Positions 1 to 64,000 of a stretch of DNA of 64,000 bases are shown here, piece after piece (position 1 is the stretch's first letter; each line of letters begins with the position of its first letter). The position numbers and the translations under genes are program-made. This DNA is from Zygnema circumcarinatum SAG 698-1b (Eukaryota > Plantae > Zygnematophyceae): contig CM074804.1 in the NCBI GenBank assembly GCA_037447605.1, positions 248,001 to 312,000 of the forward strand, read 5' to 3'. The notes under the pieces were generated by a model. That model saw nothing but the letters and a program-made list of their open reading frames with translations, was not told the origin of the DNA and ran no database searches.

Positions 1-699
1 CAAATGACATTCCACTTCAGCTCTCATTTAATTCTATTCGAAAGTGCATTTACATTCAAATTCATTCATACGTCATTTTCCTAGAAAGAATGAACAACTA
101 GACGCTCACACAGACGCCCAGCAGAGAGCTTCCTGTCGTCCGCATCTCCTCCCCTTGCTCTTGTTACTTTCATCATCGCCCATCGCCACTTCCACACAAT
201 CTCCTTCCAAGGCAGGCGACGACCAGGAGCACCGGACTCTCTCCCGGCCCCTCTCACTGCTCCCTCCCTGCCTATCTTTTTCTCACCCTTCTTTACCCTC
301 GTCACTCCCTCCCATCACTCTCTTTCTTCCCTGGACCATCTCCCCCCACTTTCTACTTGTCAATTCCTCTCCTCCCAATTCCTGTCCATCCCTACCGCCT
401 TCAATTTCCCTTGCACCGTCCGCCTTTTCCTCTGCCTCCCTCCCCATCTTGCTCCCAATTCACCACTTGCTCTCCCCCACCCTCCCTTCTCTTTCCCCTC
501 TTCCCGCCCCATTCACTCCTCCCCTCCCTCTCCCTGTCCCTCTCACTCGCCCTCTCCCTGTCCCTCTCGCTCGCCCTCTCCCTCTCCCCATGCTCTCCCT
601 CTCCCTCCCTTCCCTCCCCCGTCACCCTTGCATTTTCTCGTCCGCCTCTTCCCCCCTCATCCCCACTCCTATCCATTTCAACCTCCACTCCCCTCTCAC

Positions 700-1059
700 C
701 TGTCTCAGGGTCGTACTTAGACCACAGCTTGCTCCTGAACTCATGGTCGGCGTTCAGCAGCCGCACCCAAATGCGCTCCGACTTCTTCCCGTCCTCCGTC
801 ACCGCATTCAAAATGGACCCTCCGATGCCGGGCACCTGACAGAGGGAGATGCCGTTGTATATGAACAGAGTATTTTAGGGTGGATGCATTCGTATGATTT
901 TACACGTACCAAATCGTAAGTAAGAAACACATTCACTTTCTGCCCGTCACCCACCAAAAGCACCGGCGGAAGCTCTGCCCCCTCTCCCTCCTCCTCGTCG
1001 GGGGGGTCCCTCCTGCGCGGCCATGGAAGCGGCCATGGCAGGAAGCTCCGCGGCGCCAT
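700..1059 (-). CDS. LCAT4: LCAT-like 4 / phospholipase A (LCAT family), 5' exons only; gene continues leftwards out of the window
   Basis: Exon 1059-955 (MAPRSF...ELPPVLL) and exon 835-700 (VPGIGGSILNAVTEDGKKSERIWVRLLNADHEFRSKLWSKYDPETG), joined by a GT-AG intron at 954-836. PVLLVPGIxGSIL and ADHEFRxKxWS match plant LCAT4 as I recall it. Confidence 0.85.
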
Positions 1060-2179
1060 GACAGTGGTAGAGAGGCGAGAGGAGAGATAGGACAGGAAGG
1101 AACAGATGACGCCATTAGATTAAGAGGAAAATTTGGGCTGGCGAGGAGCAGGTTCCATGAGCTCCTGTTCGGCTGTCCGTCAACGACAGCACGTTCATAG
1201 AATTTGACCGCTCTGTTCCGTAACGCAATTACTGCCACGCGATAGAGCTCGCGAACCAGTCGGCTTATAGTTAAAAGCACCACTGTGTTGAACCAACCAT
1301 TGAATCTGAGTGAATCTTAACATGGTCATCTTGGTTCCCCATGTTGCTTTTGTCCATGTACATTTGATGGCCTCGCCGTCGTGCGACCAATGCCACTTCC
1401 CCCTCAAACATGGCCTTTCAGTAAGAAATAATCCAAGCCAATAAATTGAGACAAAAAAAGCAAGCAACTTGCAGGAAGACTTGCAGCAATGAAATGTTTG
1501 AAAGAGCCGCATGGCTAAGAGGGTGGCCACGTGTCAAGCCGGCTCGGATCGTAGGGCCTGGATTGCCGCTGACATGTAAAGTTTGACGGCTGAGATTTAT
1601 TTATTAAAATCCGTCAAAATCTGAGGGTTGATCCGTGGATCAGCGACCTAACCAACCATTGGCTTCAATGGTTGACAGACGTGACTACGGTAGTGGTTGC
1701 AACCAGTGCCATTGCCAACTATTGCAACCATTAACTGAGTTCACCGTACTGTACTTGTGTCCGTATACAGTATTGGCACGTACAGTACAGTACAGTATTG
1801 TACGATTTCATATTTTTTCGTACACGTGTACGGTCTGAGTGAGCAGTTGCAGGTGTGCAGGACAGGAGGGCGGAGAAGACAGCGCGGGGAGGGGGAAGCC
1901 ATGGCTGCCCCGGAGGGAAGCTGGGAGCGGCGCAGATCCGCCATGGCTGCTGCTGTACGAAAGCAGATCCATTAAGGGCGTCTCCGTAATCCTAGGAAAT
2001 CCGGAAAGCTGCGAGCTTTTTCTTTTCTGGGCCTCCTCCTTCTGCTACTAGTACTCCGCAGCCCTCTCTCCCTCCTTTATTTTTTCTTTCTTCCTACCTC
2101 AACATTCTTTCTTTTATCCTCCATCTCACTTTCCTCCCCTATCCCTCCGTCTTCTCATCCCCCTTTCCCTCCCCGTTTC

Positions 2180-2421: not shown

Positions 2422-2762
2422 ATGAAAGCGGCCATGTCAGGGCGGCGCGGAGCGGGCCGGCGCGGCCCTGCAGGAGGGAAGACGCGGCGCGTGACAGTTG
2501 TCGGCGTGCTGGCTACGCTCGTGCTGCTCTGGCTGCTCGGTGTCACCGTCTGGCACTTTGGGGACCCCAGGTACTGCCATTCGGGACTCTTTCCCTTCTG
2601 CTATTTCACGCAGCTCTTGCTGATCATTCTGATGTTTAGTTGTTCGGAGCATCCGCATCACTCGAATTGTTTGAATTTTCGTAAAAAATGTTCAAATGTC
2701 TGGTGGCAAGTGTGGATGTGAGGTTTCTCCTGGCTGTTGCATTCTGTAGGTTTCGTGTCCGT

Positions 2763-2851
<89 letters not shown>

Positions 2852-5800
2852 GGAGGGGGGGGAGAGAGGGACATGCGATAAGAGATCGAGCGGGAGAGGA
2901 GAGATGAAAACGAGAGAGAGAAAGGGAGACAGAGAAATAGAGATGGAGATAGAATAAACTGGCCGAAAGCGCTTGAAATGTACAGCTTGTCCTGTATATA
3001 CTCATTACATGTGCAAGAAGCTAGAGCACATCACTTGAATAGTGAGTCTGTGATCCTTTTGAAAAGAAATGGGCCGTTTTTTAATGGTCAAATAGTTTCG
3101 CAAACTTTGAGATCTGTCTTTTTTAGGCTTTCCGATTTTCAGGAGTGTCGGACAAACAGCAGTCGATCAACTTGATACAGAAAGGGCATAAACCCTTCCT
3201 TGGGTTTTCCATGTAATACCTCGGTGTTTGCTTTCTCAACATCCTTCTCATAACTCTTCCTATTCCACTGCTTTTGAGGGTGCTTGCAGTTCCTTATTTT
3301 TTTCGTCGGTTAAAAAGGAAACGCCTCAAGTACCGTTGGATGAGACTATTAAAGTAAGCAGCCCAGAGATGGGAAATGTTGATATCTCTCAGAGGCTTCC
3401 GGCACCGGAGGATACTATAGAAAACGGAGAGGAGAAAAAACCAGAGGGGGGTTTAGATTCACCGTCTGGCCCGCATGATGTTGTGGAGGATGAGGCGAAA
3501 GTAGGAGAGATCGATGCGAGTCAATTTCTTGATAAGGCGGAGGATGGCAAGGTGTTGGGTACTGAGGAGAAAGAAGAAGAGAGAGGGAGGGAAATTCAGA
3601 AAGAGATTGAGATTAAGATGGCGGCAAAAGAGGCAGGCTGGGGGGATGAAGGAGGTGATGAAGGAAAAGGGGAGATGAGGAATATGGGCGAGAGTGAGAC
3701 GGGAGAGGCGGTCGATAAAGGAGTAGCTGAGAAAGAGCAGGGGGATAGCAGTCGAGGTGGTGAAAATTTAGGGCTTTCTGAGGAACTTGAGAAAGGGGAG
3801 AAAGGGAGGAGTAGAGTAGGAGTGACGTTTGGAGATGAGAAGGAGGAGGCTAGTGAGGAGGGACTCCCGAAAACTCTGGAAAACATAAGAAGTGAGAAGG
3901 AAAGGAGGCAGAGAGAAGAGGAAGGCTTTGGGGATGAGGAGGAAGGTGAAAAGGTAATTGCGACAGGCGGGAGGGGTAGTGGGAGGGACAGCAAAATGAG
4001 TGGAAATGGTTGGGATGAGGAGGAGAACGAGGAAGGTCAGAATGCAAGGAATGATGGAAGGCAGGTTGTGGACGACGAGGAGGGAGGGCTTGGGGAGAAT
4101 GAAAGAAAAGAGAAAGAGAGAATTGAGGAAGATATGAGGAATGAGATTGGAGGGCGAGAAAGTTTTGAGAGAGCCAAGTTGCGCTTTAGTCGGAAAATGT
4201 TGCCAGATTTCCGTGGAAACGAGGATGACTTTTCTAAGGTAAAATTGGAGAAGGAATCAGGCTTTGGAAGAGGTCAAACTGCAGGAAATGGAATGGATAT
4301 GGAAGGACGTGAAGGTGTTGATCAGGCGGGAGATGCTGAGGACGGAGACGAAGCTGGAGCCGGCGATAAAGTTAGAGGGACGAGAGAGGCGCTGGAAGTC
4401 AGAGAGAGAGCCTTAGGAGAGGAGGAGGATGAGAGCGACGGGCAATCAGAAAACGGTCGAGGTGGATTCTCAAGTCGAGGAAGGGAATATAGGGGGGCAT
4501 CACAGATGCAAGAAGACGAAGAGAAAGAAGGTTTTCCATCTCGGCGAGGTCAAGAAGTGGAGGAACAAGAGGAACATACTGCAGATATACCCAAGGAGGT
4601 TGGTGAAACTAGAAGGCGCACAAGAATTCCTGTCGATGGAGCGGGAGAGCGAAATGTTGAGGACGAGGGAGAGTGGAGAAAAGGCCTTGTTGATGAAGAC
4701 GGAGTGGGAAATGGTGCAGGTGGAGAGAAAGGAGGTGAGGGACAGCAAGGAGAAGAGGGAGATAGAGCAGGAGCAGGAGTGAGAGTGGGGGATGGCGAGA
4801 GAGAAGGAGAGGATATAGGTGTGAAGGTAGAGGACGGTGGTTCAGTGGACGATGATGATGACTTCGAAGGTGAAGCTGAAGGAAACCTGCGGAAAAGCCT
4901 CATAGGCTCCAATGACGTCAAGATTCAGGAGGCGAAAATTGCAGGTAAGATTATATAATGGTCACCCCCTTCACCCACCTTTTCTCTCTCTCCCTCCACT
5001 CTCTCCCTGTCCCACCCCATCCGTCCCCGTCTTCGTCCACCTTCCGCTCCCCCTCCCGGTTCCCCTCCCGCTCCCCCTCCCTCTCCCTCTCCCTCTCCCC
5101 CTGCCTCCCCCGCTCCCCCTCCCCCTCGCCCTCCCCCNNNNNNNNNNTCTTGTCCTCTCGCTCTCTGTCTTTCTCCCTCTTTCTAACTTTGCAGCCCCTC
5201 TCCCTTTCCCCAATCCAATTGGGACGTTCGCCCATACACCACACCTCCTTTTCTTATTTTGACTTCACTGAGATAAGGATTTGTGAGAAGGTTTTTGTAA
5301 GACTCTTCACCTTAGTGATTTTGACCTAAAATTGACCTAGGATGCTCATGCTACTGTAGGTGAGGGAGAGGAACATGATGAGGAGCCTGAAAGGCTGAGC
5401 ATTCCGGGAAGCAGCATTAAGGACGCTGCGGAGGTGATAAGGGTTGAGGAAACTCTGCATTGCCTCAGCCACGAGGGAAGATGGATATACAACTCGGCTC
5501 CTCGATGGCTCCCATGGGACTTGAATCCGTTGGATAATCCCGAACACCCGAACTATCAAACATGTGACGAGCTCTTTGTTAAGGAGTAAGTGCTGCGAGG
5601 TTGAAATGGAGTAACTCACAACCTTTTTATAAGCTATTGATGAATTGCTAAACTATGAGGAGAGGCTTTTGGTCTGTAAGTTGCTGACGGAGTTCTGGAA
5701 TTTTCTTGTCCATATCATTCAGACTGACAGAGAGAGAGGGGAAAAGAGATAGAGAAGGATGGTTGCAGAGGGAGAGAATGCCTGGTAGGGAAGGTAGAAA

Positions 5801-8800
5801 GAGAGAGAGGGAGACTGCTGTCTTCAGAATCTGTAACCGAACGAGAGGCTTGAATAAAAATGCCTCGAGACTGAGAATTCTCAAAATGTCCTGCAGGTCT
5901 GGAGGCGTATATGGGGAAAAAGCAGAGATGGCTCGCATCCATGGGCGAACCTGGAAAGTCCGCGAAGCGTTGCTGTATGAATGGCATACGGTTGGGCATG
6001 GCTGCTCCTTTGAGCAGTTCAATAGGGAGGGATTTTGTCAAGTAATCGGAGGTCGGAATGTAGTGGTAGTGGGTGATTCCTTCTCTCTCGACTTTCATGA
6101 TGCGCTGCTGAACCATCTCGTGACTGCAAAGCAGCGCTCTACCTCGGGCTGGCTCGCAGACGCTTGGTGAGTTCTCTCTTTCTCCCACTCTCCCTCCCTC
6201 TCCCTCTCCCTCTCCCTCTCCCTCTCCCTCTCTTACTCTCTATATCTCTCCCTCTCTTTGTCACTCTCTTCCTTTGCCCCCCCAGTTGTGGCCACCACTG
6301 GCAACTCATATGTTGAGTGAAAAACATACATAGACTTCTCCGGTGCATGAACAGGCGAGAGAGAGAGAGATAAAGAGAGGAGAGAAAAAGAGAGGGAGGG
6401 AAAAAGGAGACGTGCATACCAAAGTTGAATCACACACCTATTCGCCCTCCAAATTTCTTAGCTCTTAAAGTTGGTAAACCTGCGGAATCTCCAAAATTAT
6501 TACAATTTGAGGACCCTCAAATACGCAAAACATTCACTAACTGTGAGGCTAGATGTGTGGAGCAGGGGAAAGCACATCAGGCAGCCATGCCATCTCGAGG
6601 GCCACCAACTATGCACTGATGTTCAAGGAGCTGCCGGAGGTTTTGAACTGAGGGTGGTTCTGAACCCTTTCCTCACTCCTGACACGGGTGAACCCTCCTG
6701 GCACAACAAGCGATGGGTTCACAAACTTAAGGAGTGGAATACAGGGGTTCTTGTTCTGAATCGAGGAAGCCGCTTCCGAGAAAGTGAGCCAACATTTCCC
6801 TTCAAAATGGAACCTTTGCAGCTCCAATGAATTATGTACAACCCTTCAAACTTAGGAAGTTCCAAGTGTGCTCGAAACCTTTACTTTTCAGCTTTAATTT
6901 CGAGAAAAGGGCTAAATGGAAGGGACAATGGCGATCCTTCTGTTCACTTGATCTTGGAGGCGCTTTGTTTAGGCTTATGCAGTGTAATTTGATAGGGAAG
7001 TGCATGCAGGGTTTTTTCGGGTTAAACATTAAAAGACACAAGTGGAACAGTGAAGGAATAGCAGCAGATGTTTTAGTCAATAGTGCAAGCTGAGACTCGT
7101 GTGTGATTTAGAGTCTCGAGGTTTCTGAAGGCCTTTGCATAATGGATTTTTAATGCTTTTGGCATTTTGTAAAGCAATGCTCGTACAAGTGGGCTTGATT
7201 CTTACTTGGAGTTGCGGTTGCGCGGTTGCCGAACGCAGCGGAGGAGCTCCTTCGGGATGTGCGCGAAACTCTTACAGCTGTCCGTACACTCTTTCCGGAT
7301 TTGCTCATCATTTGGAGGAACACTGCAGGGGGGCATCCCAGCTGCCATGTGCACTGGGCACCCTTATCAGAACGCATGGACCCGAAAAATGTGGTGTTTC
7401 CTCTCAACTGGCATAGACATCCCGAGCAGAACGAAGCGATACAACCTCTACTGAAGGTATGTTTGAATGTCTTTATACTAAAGAACTGAACTTAAGAACT
7501 GAAGAACTGAGGAACTGAGGTTAAGAACTGGTTATAGTAACATAGCGCTTGTAAGGCCTTGAGCATTGGCAGCCAACATGATTCACTACGATGCTGCAAT
7601 ACGTTTAACTATCCAAGTTATCCAGGAAACCTGAAGTGTTCGAACTCGAAATTGCAGGAATTTGGAGTGGTGTACATGGACATAGAGACCGCTACTTCGT
7701 TACGACCGGATGGGCATCATGTGCGGTTTGATGGAACTGTTGACTGCCATCATTACTGCATGCCGGGACCCCTCGACCACTGGGTATCCATGTTTTATAA
7801 CGTCCTTCTGCAATTGGAACGAGGGAAGTCGGAGAAGGAGTTGGAAGAGGAGGAGGAGGCAGAGGGGAAAGAGACTGGAGGAGGTGACTCCTTCAGAAGG
7901 GAGGGGACTGTCAGAGCCATCACCCCCCATCACCTCGATGATGACGAGAGGAGAGGAGAGGCTACAAGTAAGGGTGAAGACTCCATAGGGAGTGAGGAGA
8001 AAGGAAACAAGGAAACTTGGCGTGAAGGGAGGACTGAAGTCGTGGATGAGGAGGAACGGGGTAGGGGATTGTTGCCAGGGACGAACAAGAATACTCAGTT
8101 TCAAATGGGAATGCGTCAAGAACGAGCAGAAGGAAATGTGGAGCGCAGAGATCAGGAAGATGCATTCGATTTCACGGAAAGGAACAGGGGTTTTGAGGGG
8201 CAGGGCTTGGAACGAGGAGCTGAGCAAGAGAGGATACTAAAGGTTGGAGGGGAGAAGTGGGAAGCTGGTGAGGGAGAGGAGGAAGGCAAGAGGTTTGTCA
8301 AGGGTAAGCCTCTTGGTGACAAATCTGGAGCATCCGAGAGAGAGAATGAAAGGGAAGATGAAGACAATGATGAGGACTTGGAGGGGAGGGAGAAGGGAAG
8401 AAGTGAGACGAACGAGAGAGGAAATGAGTGGACCGCCGAGAAAAGCAATGTTTCTGAAGAGAAAGTGGAGGGGGAGGAGGCTGAACGACAAGGTGTGGGA
8501 GAGAAGCGGGTGACGATAGTTACTGAGCGAGGAGGCCGAGAGGAGGATGAGACGCGGCAGAGGGTGGTGACTGGAGAAGGAAAGGAGGAAATGGAAGAGA
8601 AGGAATGGAGAGAGGCGCTTGAGAGGTCTAGAAATTCTAAAAATGAAGACATTCCCGAGGGAGACATGGTGACGACTGTAGACAGTGAGAGGGAAGTTGC
8701 GGATGTGAGGGATGCTGACGACAGTGATTTTGGTGATGCAAGAAAGAGTGGTCAGGAAGAGGCGAAAAGCACCACTGGGGAGGCAGAGGAAAGCAGTGAT

Positions 8801-11130
8801 AGCAGGCTACAGGGTTTGCTTGGCAAAGAAATAGATATGGGAGGGGGTGTGCGAGAGAGGATTCGAGAAGATGGTGAGAGAGATGTTGATGGTGGTGTTA
8901 ATGATGCAAAGAAGGGTGAGCAGGAGTCTGAAAGCAGCACAAGCGGAGAAGGCGGCAATCGTTCAAGCAGGATGAATGACTCCCAGGTTAATGAAATGGA
9001 GTTGAGAGGGGTGGTTGTGGGAGAGGAGGGGGCGGAGACGGTGAGAGGTGTGGGGGGAGAGGAGGATGAGGGAGGCGCTCAATCTTCCTGGCGTGAAACT
9101 GCAGATGGTGGTGATGCGATAAGAGGAGGTGAAGGTGTGTTAGGGAAAGGGGATGGTGTGATAATAGGTGGTGAAAGCGATGTGCGAGGTAGGGAAGATG
9201 AAGGTGGGCAAGCTGCTGGAAAGGGTACAGGAGGAGATGATGAAGTTGGTAAAGGTGATGTGAAGGATGTTGGTGATGTTGGTGGAGATGAGGCATCACA
9301 AGAGAAGGAAACGGGAGAGGAAAAAGAGAAGCAACCGGAACCGATGAATCAAGATCAGAGCTTACAACTTGATGGCGGTTCCACTTCCCAACCACTTGAA
9401 AAGTCTGGCGATAGTCAGGAGAGTCTGATAGGGGCTGAAGGGGCTAAGCAAGGAAATTCGACTGAAGAGGAGGGTTCTTCTGCAGAGAACAGCAGCAGCC
9501 GACAGGAGACAGGAGGTGATGTGATGGAAGGGAAGGTGGAAGTGAGTGATGTTAATGTGGGAGACGTTGTTAGAGAGGCAAAGGAGGATGAGGCAGTAGG
9601 GGAGAAAAGAGTGGAGGATGCGGATGCAGAACAAGTGCAAGGGCAGAGAGAGGCTGCTGAGAAGATAGGGGAAGCGGAGTCGAATGTCAAAAGTATTGAT
9701 AACTCTGGAAACACAGGATTTGGTGAACTTACGGCTATTAACGCGTCCGGCAATGCTACTGAGACTGCAGTGACAGGACCGCAAGGGGATAAGCAGGGAA
9801 GCTTGTTGTCTGAAGCAGGGGTGCTTCCAGAAAGTAAGGAGGAAGAGGGGAAGACTGTCGTACATGATGCGTCGGAAGATATCGAATTTCTTGAGGTACA
9901 ACCTGCGACTAAGGAGGGAGGTGCAGACGAAGTGAAAGGAGAGGGAGAGGGTGCGAAGGACGGCGAAAAAGGGAAGAGCAGCGCTTCTTCTGAAGGTGAG
10001 ACTGTGAGAGCGAGAGTCGTAGGCTTAGGGCTAGCAGTTGGGTGGGTTCTTGGATGGAAAAACAAAGTTATGGGTCCTATTCCTATTTTGTTAAAGTGTC
10101 CAACCTTAACTGACAATGGAAACAACCTAAACTTCTTTAACGTTAAGAAGCCCACAAACCTGAAAACTCTGATAAATCGGTCGGTTAATCGGTTAATAGC
10201 AATTATAAACCTGGTTTTATAATCGTGTGCAGGCTTGCCAGCAAAAGTTTCAAGACCGCCTGTTGCGAACGCTACCAAGTTCAGTGCTTACATTCCGGGG
10301 ACCAATGTGAACAGCCCAGAGCAGGTTCAGAGTGTGGAAAGGACCCTTTCATGCTTCAGTTCTGAAGGGCGTTGGGTGTACAACAAAACTCCTCGATGGG
10401 TTCCATGGGATTTAAATCCTCAAGATCATAGACAGCAACCCGATTATAAGTCGTGCGATATCGACCACAAGAAGTAAGTCAACTGTACTCTTTGTTTTTT
10501 TAGGGCTTGTAGTATTTAAGCCATTTGATAGTTTCGTAGAGCGTTGAGGTTTCTTAATGTTTACACACTTGCTGTGACCATCGTATGGATGCTATCAACG
10601 GGAAGTTACATCTTCGCTCTCGTTCCTCTTCCTCTGCCTTCGTTCCTCTCCCTCCCTACCTTTCCCTTCTCCATGTCGCCCATTCTGCACTTTCACACAC
10701 TCCCGCTTGCTGTCCCTCTCCCTTCTTCTCTCTCATTTTGGGCTCACTCTCTCACTTCGTCCCTCTTCCCGACCGCTTGAACTTGAAACTCATAGAAACA
10801 GATATAGAAACTGATCAAGGTAAGGAGGGTCGGTTTTGGCCTTTCAGACACCACGGTGGTGTGTACGGCGAGGATGCGGACAAAGAGTGGAAGAAGGGCG
10901 AATCTGGAAAATGGAGGGTTCGCAGGGAAATTAAATATGAATGGCGAACGAAATCTTGCAATTTCGAACAGTTCAACCGGGAGAGATTTTGTCGCGAGGT
11001 CGGAAAGCGGAACATAGTGATAGTGGGAGACGCTGCCCAACTGCAACTTCATGATGCCATGCTCAATCATCTCGTGACAAGCGAAACGAGAGCCGCAGCA
11101 GGCTGGCTAGGGGACGCCAGGTCTCTCCCC

Positions 11131-11200
<70 letters not shown>

Positions 11201-12135
11201 TCTCTCTCTCTCTCTCACTCTCGTTGATCCTCGATTTTCTAATTCCCGTTTGTTCACATAGTTGTTACGTTGCTCCGTTGAAAGTAAGAAGAAAAGCTTA
11301 GCTCAGATCTAGTCACAGCGATGGCGCGTGCGGGCGGGCGCATGAGAGAAAAAGGGGGAGGGAGAGGAGAAAGAGTGAGAGAGCGGGAGAGAGTGTGTGA
11401 GAGAGAGAGGGATTAGGTTACTCATTTGAGAGTATGTCTTTTTGTGTGGAGCAGAGCAAACAAGTCGGAGGGTGCTTGCGCTTTAAGGGGTCATCAGCTC
11501 TGCGGAGACATCCTTGGAGGAGAGGGAGTGAACGTCCGAGTAGTAAGGAACAACCTCCTCTCTCCCGACAAAGCGGGAGGAGGGGGAGCCAACAACAAGT
11601 GGCTCCGCCAACTCGGGAAGTGGAATGCCGATATTGTCATTCTCAACAGGGGAGCGGTGTACAGACCAAGTAAGGAGGGAGAGAATGGGAGATGGGAGTG
11701 AGTGGAGCGGGCAGAGGGAAATAGGGAAGGGTGAGAGTGACCAGGCAAGAGACAATGCGGGCGAGAGAAAGGGAGGTTTGTGGTTCAAAGCTGCGAGATA
11801 GATTTCTTCGGTTTGGGGGAATGAAAATTTATCGTTTTTTACCACTGTGGTTGATTTCTTTGAACTGAGATTGGTCTCGTTCTATGTGGTTGCTGCAGTG
11901 GGCGTATTTGTTGAGCAGTTAAGGGAAATGCTGGAAAAGCTCCGTTCGACTTATCCGGAAGTTCTCATCCTGTGGCGAAACACTCCTCAGGGTCACCCGG
12001 AATGTGGAAAATATGTTGAGGCGTTGAAGAAGCCGTTAGTGAATATTACAGGACAGAATTGGGAGCACTATCCTGCGCAGAATGATGCAGCAAAGCAGCT
12101 CATGAAGGTACCAAACCCACTTCTCTCTCTCTTTC

Positions 12136-12173
<38 letters not shown>

Positions 12174-12525
12174 GTGCGTGTGTGTCAGGGTAGGTGTGGG
12201 GGTGGATGTGAGCAAGCGAATGTGAGCGTTTGCAGGAGCGGAGTGTGAGTGAGGGCCTTAAGGAACTGATGATGATTTGTCCGAATGCTAATTCTTACCT
12301 TTGCATGGAGGAATGGAATTTCAGGAATATGGAGCTGTGTATGTGGATGTGGCTACTCCCACAGCCCTAAGACCGGACGGGCACCACCTTCTCCCTGACG
12401 GCACACGCGACTGCGTAAATTATTGCTCTCCCGGACCCATCGACCAATGGGTGACACTCATTTACAACACAATCCTCACCCTTAACAGACATTCTTCCTC
12501 CCCGAAATCAGCAGTCAAAGCTTAA
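2422..12525 (+). CDS. Type II membrane protein (~2070 aa) with two tandem TBL/PC-esterase (SGNH) domains, each preceded by a long acidic low-complexity stem
   Basis: 12 exons, all GT-AG with matching phases: 2422-2570, 3290-4944, 5360-5585, 5897-6166, 6566-6783, 7239-7456, 7658-9995, 10233-10473, 10848-11120, 11455-11669, 11899-12107, 12325-12525 (6213 nt). N-terminal anchor VTVVGVLATLVLLWLLGVTVW. Domain 1: GCSFEQFNREGFC..VVVGDS, WRNT, RPDGHH, DCHHYCMPGP. Domain 2: SCNFEQFNRERFC..VIVGDA, WRNT, RPDGHH, DCVNYCSPGP. Confidence 0.88.
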
Positions 12526-29291: not shown

Positions 29292-29488
29292 TAATTCGGT
29301 TGCTACTGAAGACTTGATACCGACGGAAGCTTTTCCTTTTTACGGAAATACAGATACTGTCCTAACGCTTTCTCCGATACACATGAACATGCTCTGCAGC
29401 TGTGAGAGCTCCATTCAAAATCGACATAGACTCTCAACAGTAAGAGCGAGAGAGAGAGAGATAGAGAGCGAGAGAGAGAGCGAGCAAG

Positions 29489-32429
<2,941 letters not shown>

Positions 32430-55439: not shown

Positions 55440-64000
<8,561 letters not shown>

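Follow-up and report, generated by a model that had tools for sequence, protein, structure and literature searches.

The forward strand of the window, by which we mean the whole 64,000-nucleotide stretch of Zygnema circumcarinatum DNA analysed here, carries a gene that encodes two PC-esterase modules in one protein. The first module retains the catalytic residues Ser, Asp and His, and the second has lost both Ser and His. We hold it somewhat more probable than its opposite that the product is one membrane protein in which module 1 is a candidate enzyme and module 2 serves as a non-catalytic glycan-binding or substrate-positioning unit. The pattern in which plant cell-wall polysaccharides are acetylated is set by TBL/PC-esterase proteins. 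To our knowledge, XOAT1 is the only one of them with a structure, and the way in which polymer substrates are held is poorly understood. A natural pairing of a live with a dead module would allow substrate binding to be studied separately from catalysis.

Gene structure and transcript

The gene (2422-12525) is modelled with 12 exons that form a single open frame of 2,070 codons (Table 1). A sequence-only reading of this DNA had described its splice sites as intact, and all 11 introns do have GT-AG ends. The same reading placed both modules in one gene with one transcript and named the junction 9995/10233 as the point to check. RNA evidence, in the form of assembled contigs from four runs of four studies rather than reads, agrees with this on both counts. 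Every intron from 4944/5360 through 9995/10233 is removed at GT..AG borders in spliced contigs of the four studies, the last of these joints being present in all four runs. One X1 contig of 6,941 nt also agrees with the length of the whole mRNA, as the sum of about 20, 6,213 and about 708 nt. Its 1,679 nt upstream of window position 4800 correspond to exon 1, exon 2 and about 20 nt of 5' UTR, and after 10473 it continues with the opening letters of exon 9. Together, the spliced contigs and this long contig indicate a single transcript.

Table 1. Features of the two-module gene (window coordinates)
Feature	Position	Strand	Content and evidence
Exon 1	2422..2570	+	Start codon, basic cytosolic tail and sole membrane anchor; gene model, hydropathy
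Exon 2	3290..4944	+	Acidic spacer 1; gene model, joint 4944/5360 in 4 runs
Assembly gap, 10 N	5138..5147	.	Within intron 2 (4945-5359)
Module 1	5360..7830	+	Exons 3-6 and start of exon 7; PC-esterase domain
Exons 3-6	5360-5585, 5897-6166, 6566-6783, 7239-7456	+	Gene model, splice joints in contigs
Module 1 GDS	6072-6080	+	GGT GAT TCC; Ser738
Exon 7	7658..9995	+	Module 1 end, then acidic spacer 2; continuous contig in X1 and X3
Module 1 DCHH	7742-7753	+	Asp941 and His944
Intron 7, phase 1	9996..10232	+	Between spacer 2 and module 2; joint 9995/10233 in 4 runs
Module 2	10233..12525	+	Exons 8-12, stop included; PC-esterase domain
Exons 8-12	10233-10473, 10848-11120, 11455-11669, 11899-12107, 12325-12525	+	Gene model
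Module 2 GDA	11026-11034	+	GGA GAC GCT; Ala1834
Module 2 DCVN	12409-12420	+	GAC TGC GTA AAT; Asp2033 and Asn2036

The contigs were compared with the window letter by letter over 4800-10799, and none of the four runs shows a difference. Exons 9-12 are supported by the run-on into exon 9, by the contig-length arithmetic and by the share of 31-mers. Of the 31-mers sampled from 7239-12525, X1 contains a share of 0.72, where 0.66 is expected from exon-only words and about 0.52 if exons 9-12 are left out. The assembly gap has no effect on the coding sequence because each of the four runs has intron 2 spliced out. From 5005 onward, unspliced contigs no longer agree with the window sequence, and the low-complexity letters beside the gap are therefore unreliable.

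It is conceivable that the giant protein is an artefact of two separate products, with module 1 translated from an mRNA in which intron 7 is kept, and module 2 from a transcript or start of its own. An unspliced contig (9967-10260, depth 26) does exist in X3, the frame of such a transcript would run on to a stop at 10219, and contigs are no proof of full-length molecules. However, the spliced joint occurs in the four studies at depths of 169-398, 7-15 times that of the unspliced form, exon 8 supplies no Met, signal or anchor, and related proteins carry both modules in one ORF (see below). Low-depth unspliced contigs are found at other introns too, which suggests pre-mRNA. We consider two products extremely improbable. 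Isoforms with internal starts, or proteolytic separation of the modules, may nevertheless occur.

Protein architecture and family placement

From its N-terminus, the protein consists of a basic segment, an anchor, an acidic spacer, module 1 (GDS, DCHH), another acidic spacer and module 2 (GDA, DCVN). The cytosolic tail (aa 1-23) is rich in Arg and Lys, with a pI of 12, and is followed by the only segment of the whole protein with a hydropathy above 1.6 (aa 24-46). This protein is presumably of type II (N-in) topology and resident in the secretory pathway. Spacer 1 (aa 50-625, rich in Glu, Gly and Asp) and spacer 2 (aa 969-1720) each have a pI of 4.4 and no cysteine, and these long acidic stretches are probably disordered. 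The modules (aa ~626-968 and ~1721-2070) have nine cysteines apiece and contain two complete domains, at aa 630-966 and 1726-2059. FEQFNRExFC, WRNT..GH, LRPDGHH and YCxPGP motifs are common to both, and the earlier claim that the scaffold (FEQFNRExFC, WRNT, RPDGHH, YCxPGP) is retained was thus correct. Module 2 was also rightly described as lacking a start and an anchor; no Met precedes its domain, and the anchor at aa 24-46 is the only one.

Both modules exceed the gathering cut-off of Pfam PF13839 (27 bits), at 53.3 bits for module 1 and 35.4 bits for module 2, in alignments limited to the C-terminal half of the profile (positions 172-283 and 192-283, respectively). PMR5N (PF14416) has no match at E <= 1 in either module, and C-x4-G-x-W..PR..PW is the sole motif that resembles it. 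A family profile searched against the PDB matches only XOAT1 (6CCI; E 1.3e-8), with alignment at VGDS and DCxHWCLPG. The AlphaFold model of an orthologous module 2 (P0001:917-1264, not one of the window's own modules) has a pLDDT of 87 and a pTM of 0.89; among known folds it again matches 6CCI best (E 4e-9, TM 0.57). The structure alignment with 6CCI has about 12% sequence identity.

XOAT1 (ESKIMO1/TBL29 of Arabidopsis), which we take to be a xylan 2-O-acetyltransferase of the TBL/PC-esterase family, resembles the window protein in having a type II anchor and, after it, an SGNH-like domain rich in cysteine. The two also share a C-x4-G-x-W start motif, a GDS block and a DCxH[WY]C.PG block. In contrast to XOAT1, with its one domain in about 490 aa, the window protein has two domains and acidic spacers of about 575 and 750 aa. 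It also lacks GDSxxRN and a detected PMR5N, and its module 2 is without Ser and His. The nearest kin of the modules are algal, protist and fungal proteins, and by its sequence the protein is a distant TBL relative outside the land-plant TBL clade. The original designation as a TBL protein therefore needs qualification: PF13839 is present in both modules, but PMR5N goes undetected and the link to XOAT1 is a profile match at about 1e-8.

Catalytic residues of the two modules

The PC-esterase catalytic triad is formed by the Ser of GDS and the Asp and His of DxxH (Anantharaman & Aravind 2010, PMC2824669). Module 1 has the complete triad (Ser738, Asp941, His944), as well as the GD Asp, the NRG Asn and the RPDGH His, and retains 55 of 60 family-conserved columns. 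All 48 canonical relatives have the His of NRGAH; module 1 has Arg there (LNRGSRF) and module 2 has Val (LNRGAVY), and no orthologue keeps this His in either module. This column probably corresponds to the block III position, where W/H is nearly invariant in PC-esterases (PMC2824669). Module 1 had been called catalytically intact; this holds for Ser, Asp and His but not for the NRGAH position. Module 1 is a candidate O-acetyl-transferase/esterase that would act on some glycan.

Module 2 has Ala in place of the nucleophile and Asn in place of the catalytic His, and the coordinates first given for these two motifs, like those for GDS and DCHH in module 1, are exact. Module 2 of the window and its counterparts in other species depart from the canonical motifs in different ways, the motif pairs being GDA/DCVN, GDH/DCWS, GDT or GDQ/DCYY, and GDA/DCYF. 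Ser is missing in six of the six sequences that cover the position (window, P0001, P0005, P0006, P0012 and P0027), and His in five of five, the DCYM block of P0027 being incomplete in the alignment. Since both nucleophile and base are missing in every orthologue, module 2 should be unable to form an acyl-enzyme.

Loss of both catalytic residues, together with branches longer than those of module 1, might suggest that module 2 is a functionless, decaying relic or the product of sequencing errors. Its five exons are intact, though, with conserved splice sites, and it shares 40-46% identity with the module 2 of distant species, between which the spacers cannot be aligned. All cysteines and 51 of the 60 family-conserved columns are retained, as had been anticipated of a domain said to keep its scaffold, and the orthologous module is predicted to fold with confidence. 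The four runs agree with the window letter for letter over the interval compared, and an error at the two codons is very unlikely because every orthologue lacks Ser and His as well. No relative above 47% identity was found, so synonymous sites would be saturated, and constraint at the protein level was used in place of dN/dS. There is very little probability left for a relic or an error. Because fold, cysteines and conserved columns persist where Ser and His are always absent, module 2 is best described, at the level of sequence, as a maintained pseudoenzyme domain.

A further alternative is that module 2 remains an enzyme through non-canonical residues, for example the GD Asp, RPDGH His and DxxH Asp, which are invariant across all module 2 sequences. 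Asp215 and His437 of XOAT1 contribute to the active site (PMC9487903), which lends this idea some substance. However, no conserved candidate nucleophile exists at or beside the Ser position, which is occupied by A, H, T, Q, A or G among the orthologues. Catalysis by this route is accordingly a long shot.

Origin of the pair

The modules share the intron phases 1,2,2,1,0, as first reported. The introns fall at the same or adjacent alignment columns (module 1/module 2: 1/1, 82/81, 174/174, 247/247 and 319/319), in keeping with the proposed intragenic duplication of a multi-exon block. Proteins with the same plan exist in four Closterium strains (P0006, sp. NIES-53, contig CASDOC010169683.1; P0005, NIES-65; P0002, Naga37s-1; P0011, Yama58-4, CAI5472652.1) and in a EukProt Trinity transcript (P0001). 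Both modules lie in one ORF in this transcript and in the Closterium gene models. Two-domain orthologues, for which a search had been proposed, thus exist in public databases, and the architecture, of which the sequence-only reading knew no description, is not confined to this genome.

In trees, module 2 is monophyletic (support 97/93 and 95/88), and so is module 1 (99/96), with internal branching that matches that of module 2. The trees also identify the Closterium proteins and P0001 as orthologues of the window protein. In every lineage, module 1 has changed less rapidly than module 2. The intron positions also match those of the Closterium gene, as located by tblastn boundaries. The grouping of all module 2 sequences in one clade makes the duplication old, and the pair appears to be a tandem duplication of a five-intron block that predates the split from the Closterium lineage. 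A 'Q-L-x-L-H-D' string after GDx might be taken for an innovation of module 2, but this reading was rejected. The string is also found in the fungal clade described below and in P0042, a single-domain Mesotaenium protein with GDS, DCFH and NRGAH. It is thus ancestral, and it is the tree that shows module 2 to be monophyletic.

The Closterium proteins follow the order of the window protein (anchor, spacer, module 1, spacer, module 2), and their module 2, with DCYY, is likewise dead. Unlike the window's module 1 with its GDS and NRG, that of Closterium has GDA and SRT and bears a large low-complexity insert. The Closterium entries are uncharacterised, and their gene models are visibly scrambled.

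We found no published account of the Closterium proteins and no description in the literature of tandem or inactive PC-esterase/TBL domains. An exon 7 word search, the P0001 search and HMMER against 1.84 billion representatives returned no entry identical or nearly identical to the window's own protein, which is either unannotated or missing from the searched protein collections. A gene of this kind is prone to mis-annotation.

Proposed function

In the reading that we favour, one gene would give rise to one mRNA of about 6.9 kb and a 2,070-aa type II membrane protein of the secretory pathway, with two disulfide-rich, TBL/XOAT1-like SGNH modules borne on long acidic spacers. Module 1 would be the putative acetylating or esterase unit acting on a glycan. 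The cleft of module 2, its former active site, would bind glycan or position substrate in cis to module 1. Non-catalytic glycan binding or substrate positioning is the most likely role for module 2. An analogy is offered by Clostridium thermocellum, where the active-site cleft of the SGNH acetyl-esterase CE2 reportedly also binds cellulose non-catalytically (work attributed to Montanier et al. in 2009). In CE2, as proposed for module 2, an SGNH cleft would serve as a carbohydrate site, although CE2 is bacterial, belongs to a different SGNH family and is still catalytic.

Alternatively, what has been conserved may be a non-catalytic role of the entire protein, given the Arg at the NRGAH position of module 1 and the GDA and SRT of Closterium. 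Both modules would then be glycan-binding or scaffold units on stalks, and the triad of module 1 would be a leftover or only weakly active. Loss of the GDS Ser and the NRG Asn from module 1 in four Closterium strains favours this, as does the replacement, in both modules of all orthologues, of a His that is invariant in canonical relatives. However, module 1 of the window has all six catalytic and associated residues listed above, that of P0001 keeps DCAH and LNRG, and module 1 is everywhere the slower to change. We judge a wholly non-catalytic protein unlikely, while granting it appreciable weight. The same features of module 1 in the window and in Closterium weaken the earlier idea that the dead module regulates the live one. 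Module 2 may bind glycan or acyl donor, the other roles first proposed for it. Should the doubly degenerate protein of Closterium be functional, PC-esterases would count wholly non-catalytic glycan binders among their members.

Inactive domains elsewhere in the family

A second class of tandems is found among EukProt/Logan transcripts (P0014-P0016, P0018-P0020, P0028 and P0079). As in the window protein, each comprises two complete modules, one without Ser and His and one canonical. The dead half has GGE, GGD or GDE with xCxN/D, and the live half GDS and DCLH. These proteins differ from the window protein in their reverse order, with the dead module first, in their short linkers and in their total length of about 750-1150 aa. 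Their halves form sister clades, which indicates an internal duplication there too, one that took place independently in a different branch of the family. The live-dead pairing has been conserved in the algal lineage closest to land plants, and a similar one arose again elsewhere in the family. PC-esterases would in this way join the enzyme families with maintained pseudoenzyme members. More tentatively, obligate enzyme-pseudoenzyme pairs, live-dead among zygnematophyte algae and dead-live in a different group of eukaryotes, could be a recurrent outcome of internal duplication, with the dead module a clamp on the acceptor polymer that sets the site or processivity of wall-glycan acetylation by the live one; we would not expect this broader scheme to hold.

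Dead PC-esterase domains also persist alone, a further point for the wholly non-catalytic alternative. Standalone proteins of Mucoromycota (for example Rhizopus delemar RO3G_08279, EIE83574.1; Umbelopsis; Calcarisporiella) carry GD[LIE]..Q.H and DCxR. They belong to the same subfamily as module 2 and, like it, retain the scaffold with Ser and His replaced. Unlike the window protein, they are fungal, have a single domain in 420-460 aa and form a clade of their own (100/99).

Gene structure and intragenic duplication

The gene for the double TBL-like protein can be rebuilt from raw sequence as 12 exons that join into one 2070-codon open frame, with GT-AG borders at 11 of 11 introns. All four catalytic-site motifs proved exact on re-check at the positions assigned by the sequence-only reading. 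Its finding is real and well observed; its interpretation is partly supported.

Exons, modules and motifs of the double TBL-like gene
Feature	Position	Strand	Basis or codons
Exon 1	2422-2570	+	gene model
Exon 2	3290-4944	+	gene model
Exon 3	5360-5585	+	gene model
Exon 4	5897-6166	+	gene model
Exon 5	6566-6783	+	gene model
Exon 6	7239-7456	+	gene model
Exon 7	7658-9995	+	gene model
Exon 8	10233-10473	+	gene model
Exon 9	10848-11120	+	gene model
Exon 10	11455-11669	+	gene model
Exon 11	11899-12107	+	gene model
Exon 12	12325-12525	+	gene model
Module 1	aa about 626-968		
GDS (module 1)	6072-6080	+	
DCHH (module 1)	7742-7753	+	
Module 2	aa about 1721-2070		
GDA (module 2)	11026-11034	+	GGA GAC GCT
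DCVN (module 2)	12409-12420	+	GAC TGC GTA AAT

Modules 1 and 2 share 46% identity across 364 aligned positions. Each carries the intron phase series 1,2,2,1,0, and the five introns of one coincide with those of the other to within one alignment column. These shared phases and positions indicate DNA-level duplication of a block of several exons, bearing out the intragenic duplication proposed earlier. Most introns of the gene contain (CT)n or (GA)n arrays.

Transcript structure and expression

Assembled contigs from four runs, each of a different study, were aligned to 4800-10799. All four are spliced, RNA-type assemblies that skip every intron in this interval (4944/5360, 5585/5897, 6166/6566, 6783/7239, 7456/7658 and 9995/10233, each with GT..AG ends), and their exon letters show zero differences from the window. 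One contig of run X1 (6941 nt) reads uninterrupted from exon 2 to exon 8. Its 1679 nt upstream of 4800 comprise exon 1, a portion of exon 2 and about 20 nt of leader, and past 10473 its letters match the first ones of exon 9. The 6941 nt add up as about 20 + 6213 + about 708 nt and so represent a full-length mRNA on contig evidence, which is not proof of full-length molecules and leaves room for minor isoforms. The single transcript postulated from sequence thus holds at its critical joint, 9995/10233, and across exons of both modules. In addition, 0.72 of sampled 31-mers from 7239-12525 are present in X1. By our arithmetic, exons only would give 0.66 and loss of exons 9-12 about 0.52; the observed share therefore shows expression of the exons of module 2.

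Several introns also occur in low-depth unspliced contigs (for example, 9967-10260 at depth 26 versus 183-398 for spliced forms), which look like pre-mRNA. Intron 2 contains a 10-N gap (5138-5147). Unspliced contigs of all four runs depart from the window at 5005, within 5005-5137, and continue with 155-255 unlike letters (ATTTCCCTCCACCCCCATC...). This divergence makes the low-complexity, intronic window letters beside the gap unreliable, and the CT-rich letters just upstream of it are probably mis-assembled. In intron 3, low-depth contigs from three runs (about 5560-5810) go on at 5810 with 255 non-window letters (AAGCTGATAGGTCTAGG...), which may reflect structural divergence between strains, or else a chimeric or alternative RNA. 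At 2180-2415 a long (CTCCCT/CTCCTT)n microsatellite abuts the start codon; the apparent 5' end of the mRNA contig, a mere 20 nt or so ahead of the ATG, coincides with the edge of this repeat.

Protein layout and fold

A basic N-terminus (pI 12) precedes the sole hydrophobic segment, aa 24-46, and together they predict a type II anchor. The two spacers (576 and 752 residues) are rich in Glu, Gly and Asp, have a pI of 4.4 and are free of cysteine; each module has nine cysteines. Pfam detects PC-Esterase (PF13839) above the cut-off of 27 in both modules (53.3 bits in module 1, 35.4 in module 2) and PMR5N in neither.

Among solved structures, the family profile matches only Arabidopsis XOAT1/ESKIMO1 (6CCI, E 1.3e-8). 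The alignment takes in VGDS and DCxHWCLPG, confirming the GDS Ser and DxxH His as the catalytic positions. For module 2 of an orthologous transcript, P0001, AlphaFold gives a confident model (pLDDT 87, pTM 0.89). In a fold comparison with this model 6CCI again ranks first (E 4e-9, TM 0.57), ahead of further carbohydrate esterases and acetyltransferases of the SGNH type.

Orthologues and age of the duplication

The anchor-spacer-module 1-spacer-module 2 plan recurs in unnamed Closterium proteins (P0006, with 1903 aa, P0005, P0002 and P0011) and, N-truncated, in P0001, a EukProt Trinity transcript. Two-domain orthologues, the object of the HMM search suggested earlier, therefore exist. Scanning 1.84 billion representatives with HMMER yielded 3445 family members, among which the orthologue group otherwise comprises only fragments (P0012, P0027, P0003, P0004 and P0085). 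The window's own protein is absent from the protein collections searched, including these representatives.

In trees, module 1 forms one clade (99/96), as does module 2 (97/93; 95/88 in a larger tree). Both branch alike internally, with the window and P0001 together and the Closterium lineage separate, which places the duplication before that split. A 303-aa single-domain protein from Mesotaenium endlicherianum (P0042, ME000293S04929), with intact GDS, DCFH and NRGAH, takes a position immediately outside the pair (98/99). It is likely the unduplicated form, or else a truncated gene model.

At a Closterium genomic locus, tblastn places exon boundaries at homologous positions in both modules. 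In the Closterium sp. NIES-53 locus L001, three consecutive copies of the homologue of exon 4, which encodes the GDx block, lie at 6274-6597, 6672-6875 and 6995-7141. Local repeats of this kind account for the scrambling of Closterium gene models (P0005, P0011 and P0002).

A second tandem class, on another branch of the family, has its dead module first (P0014-16, P0018-20, P0028 and P0079). The first module reads GGE, GGD or GDE with xCxN/D; the second is canonical (GDS, DCLH). Its two halves form sister clades whose topologies match, which indicates an independent internal duplication. Standalone GD[LIE]/DCxR domains form a clade in the Mucoromycota fungi Rhizopus, Umbelopsis and Calcarisporiella. 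Tandem or inactive PC-esterase/TBL domains are not mentioned in the founding PC-esterase paper (PMC2824669), an SGNH review (PMC9487903) or the results of full-text literature searches. The two-module architecture thus appears undescribed, as first supposed, but it is not unique to this genome.

Lost catalytic residues and retained scaffold in module 2

Ser and His are both lost from every module 2 compared, with replacements that vary by lineage: GDA and DCVN in the window, GDH and DCWS in P0001, GDT or GDQ and DCYY in Closterium, GDA and DCYF in P0012, and GDG and DCYM in P0027. Such variation fits positions long ago freed of constraint. Of 60 columns at least 85% conserved among 48 canonical relatives, module 2 retains 51 and module 1 retains 55. 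Also intact in module 2 are every cysteine, the Asp of GD, the Asn of NRG, the His of RPDGH and the Asp of DxxH; in XOAT1, according to the SGNH review (PMC9487903), Asp215 and His437 contribute to the active site. Across distant species module 2 remains 40-46% identical whereas the spacers are unalignable, strong protein-level evidence for purifying selection on module 2.

Possible functions of the two modules

We propose a type II membrane protein of the secretory pathway in which long acidic stalks would carry both modules. Module 1 would be a candidate O-acetyl-transferase/esterase. Module 2 would be a maintained pseudoenzyme whose former active-site cleft may bind or position glycan in cis.

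The description of module 1 as catalytically intact stands for its triad in the window (Ser738, Asp941 and His944), but the NRGAH His, invariant in canonical relatives, is replaced by Arg in module 1 (and by Val in module 2). In four Closterium strains, module 1 has GDA for GDS and SRT for NRG, so that both modules look non-catalytic in that lineage. This state favours the main rival, that the entire protein is non-catalytic, which we still judge rather unlikely for a protein whose module 1 triad is intact in the window. It also argues that the protein may be conserved for binding instead of catalysis, and it weakens the case for a dead module whose purpose is to regulate a live one.

Other features of the window

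A pure (AG)n dinucleotide array of about 3 kb (1490 copies, 99% matches) occupies 29443-32424. Three 10-N gaps in 57302-59753 (at 57302, 58523 and 59744) follow one another at intervals of exactly 1221 bp, and the 300 nt 3' of the first two are 100% identical. Assembly or gap filling seems to have copied one segment repeatedly here; the pattern does not look like a genuine tandem repeat.
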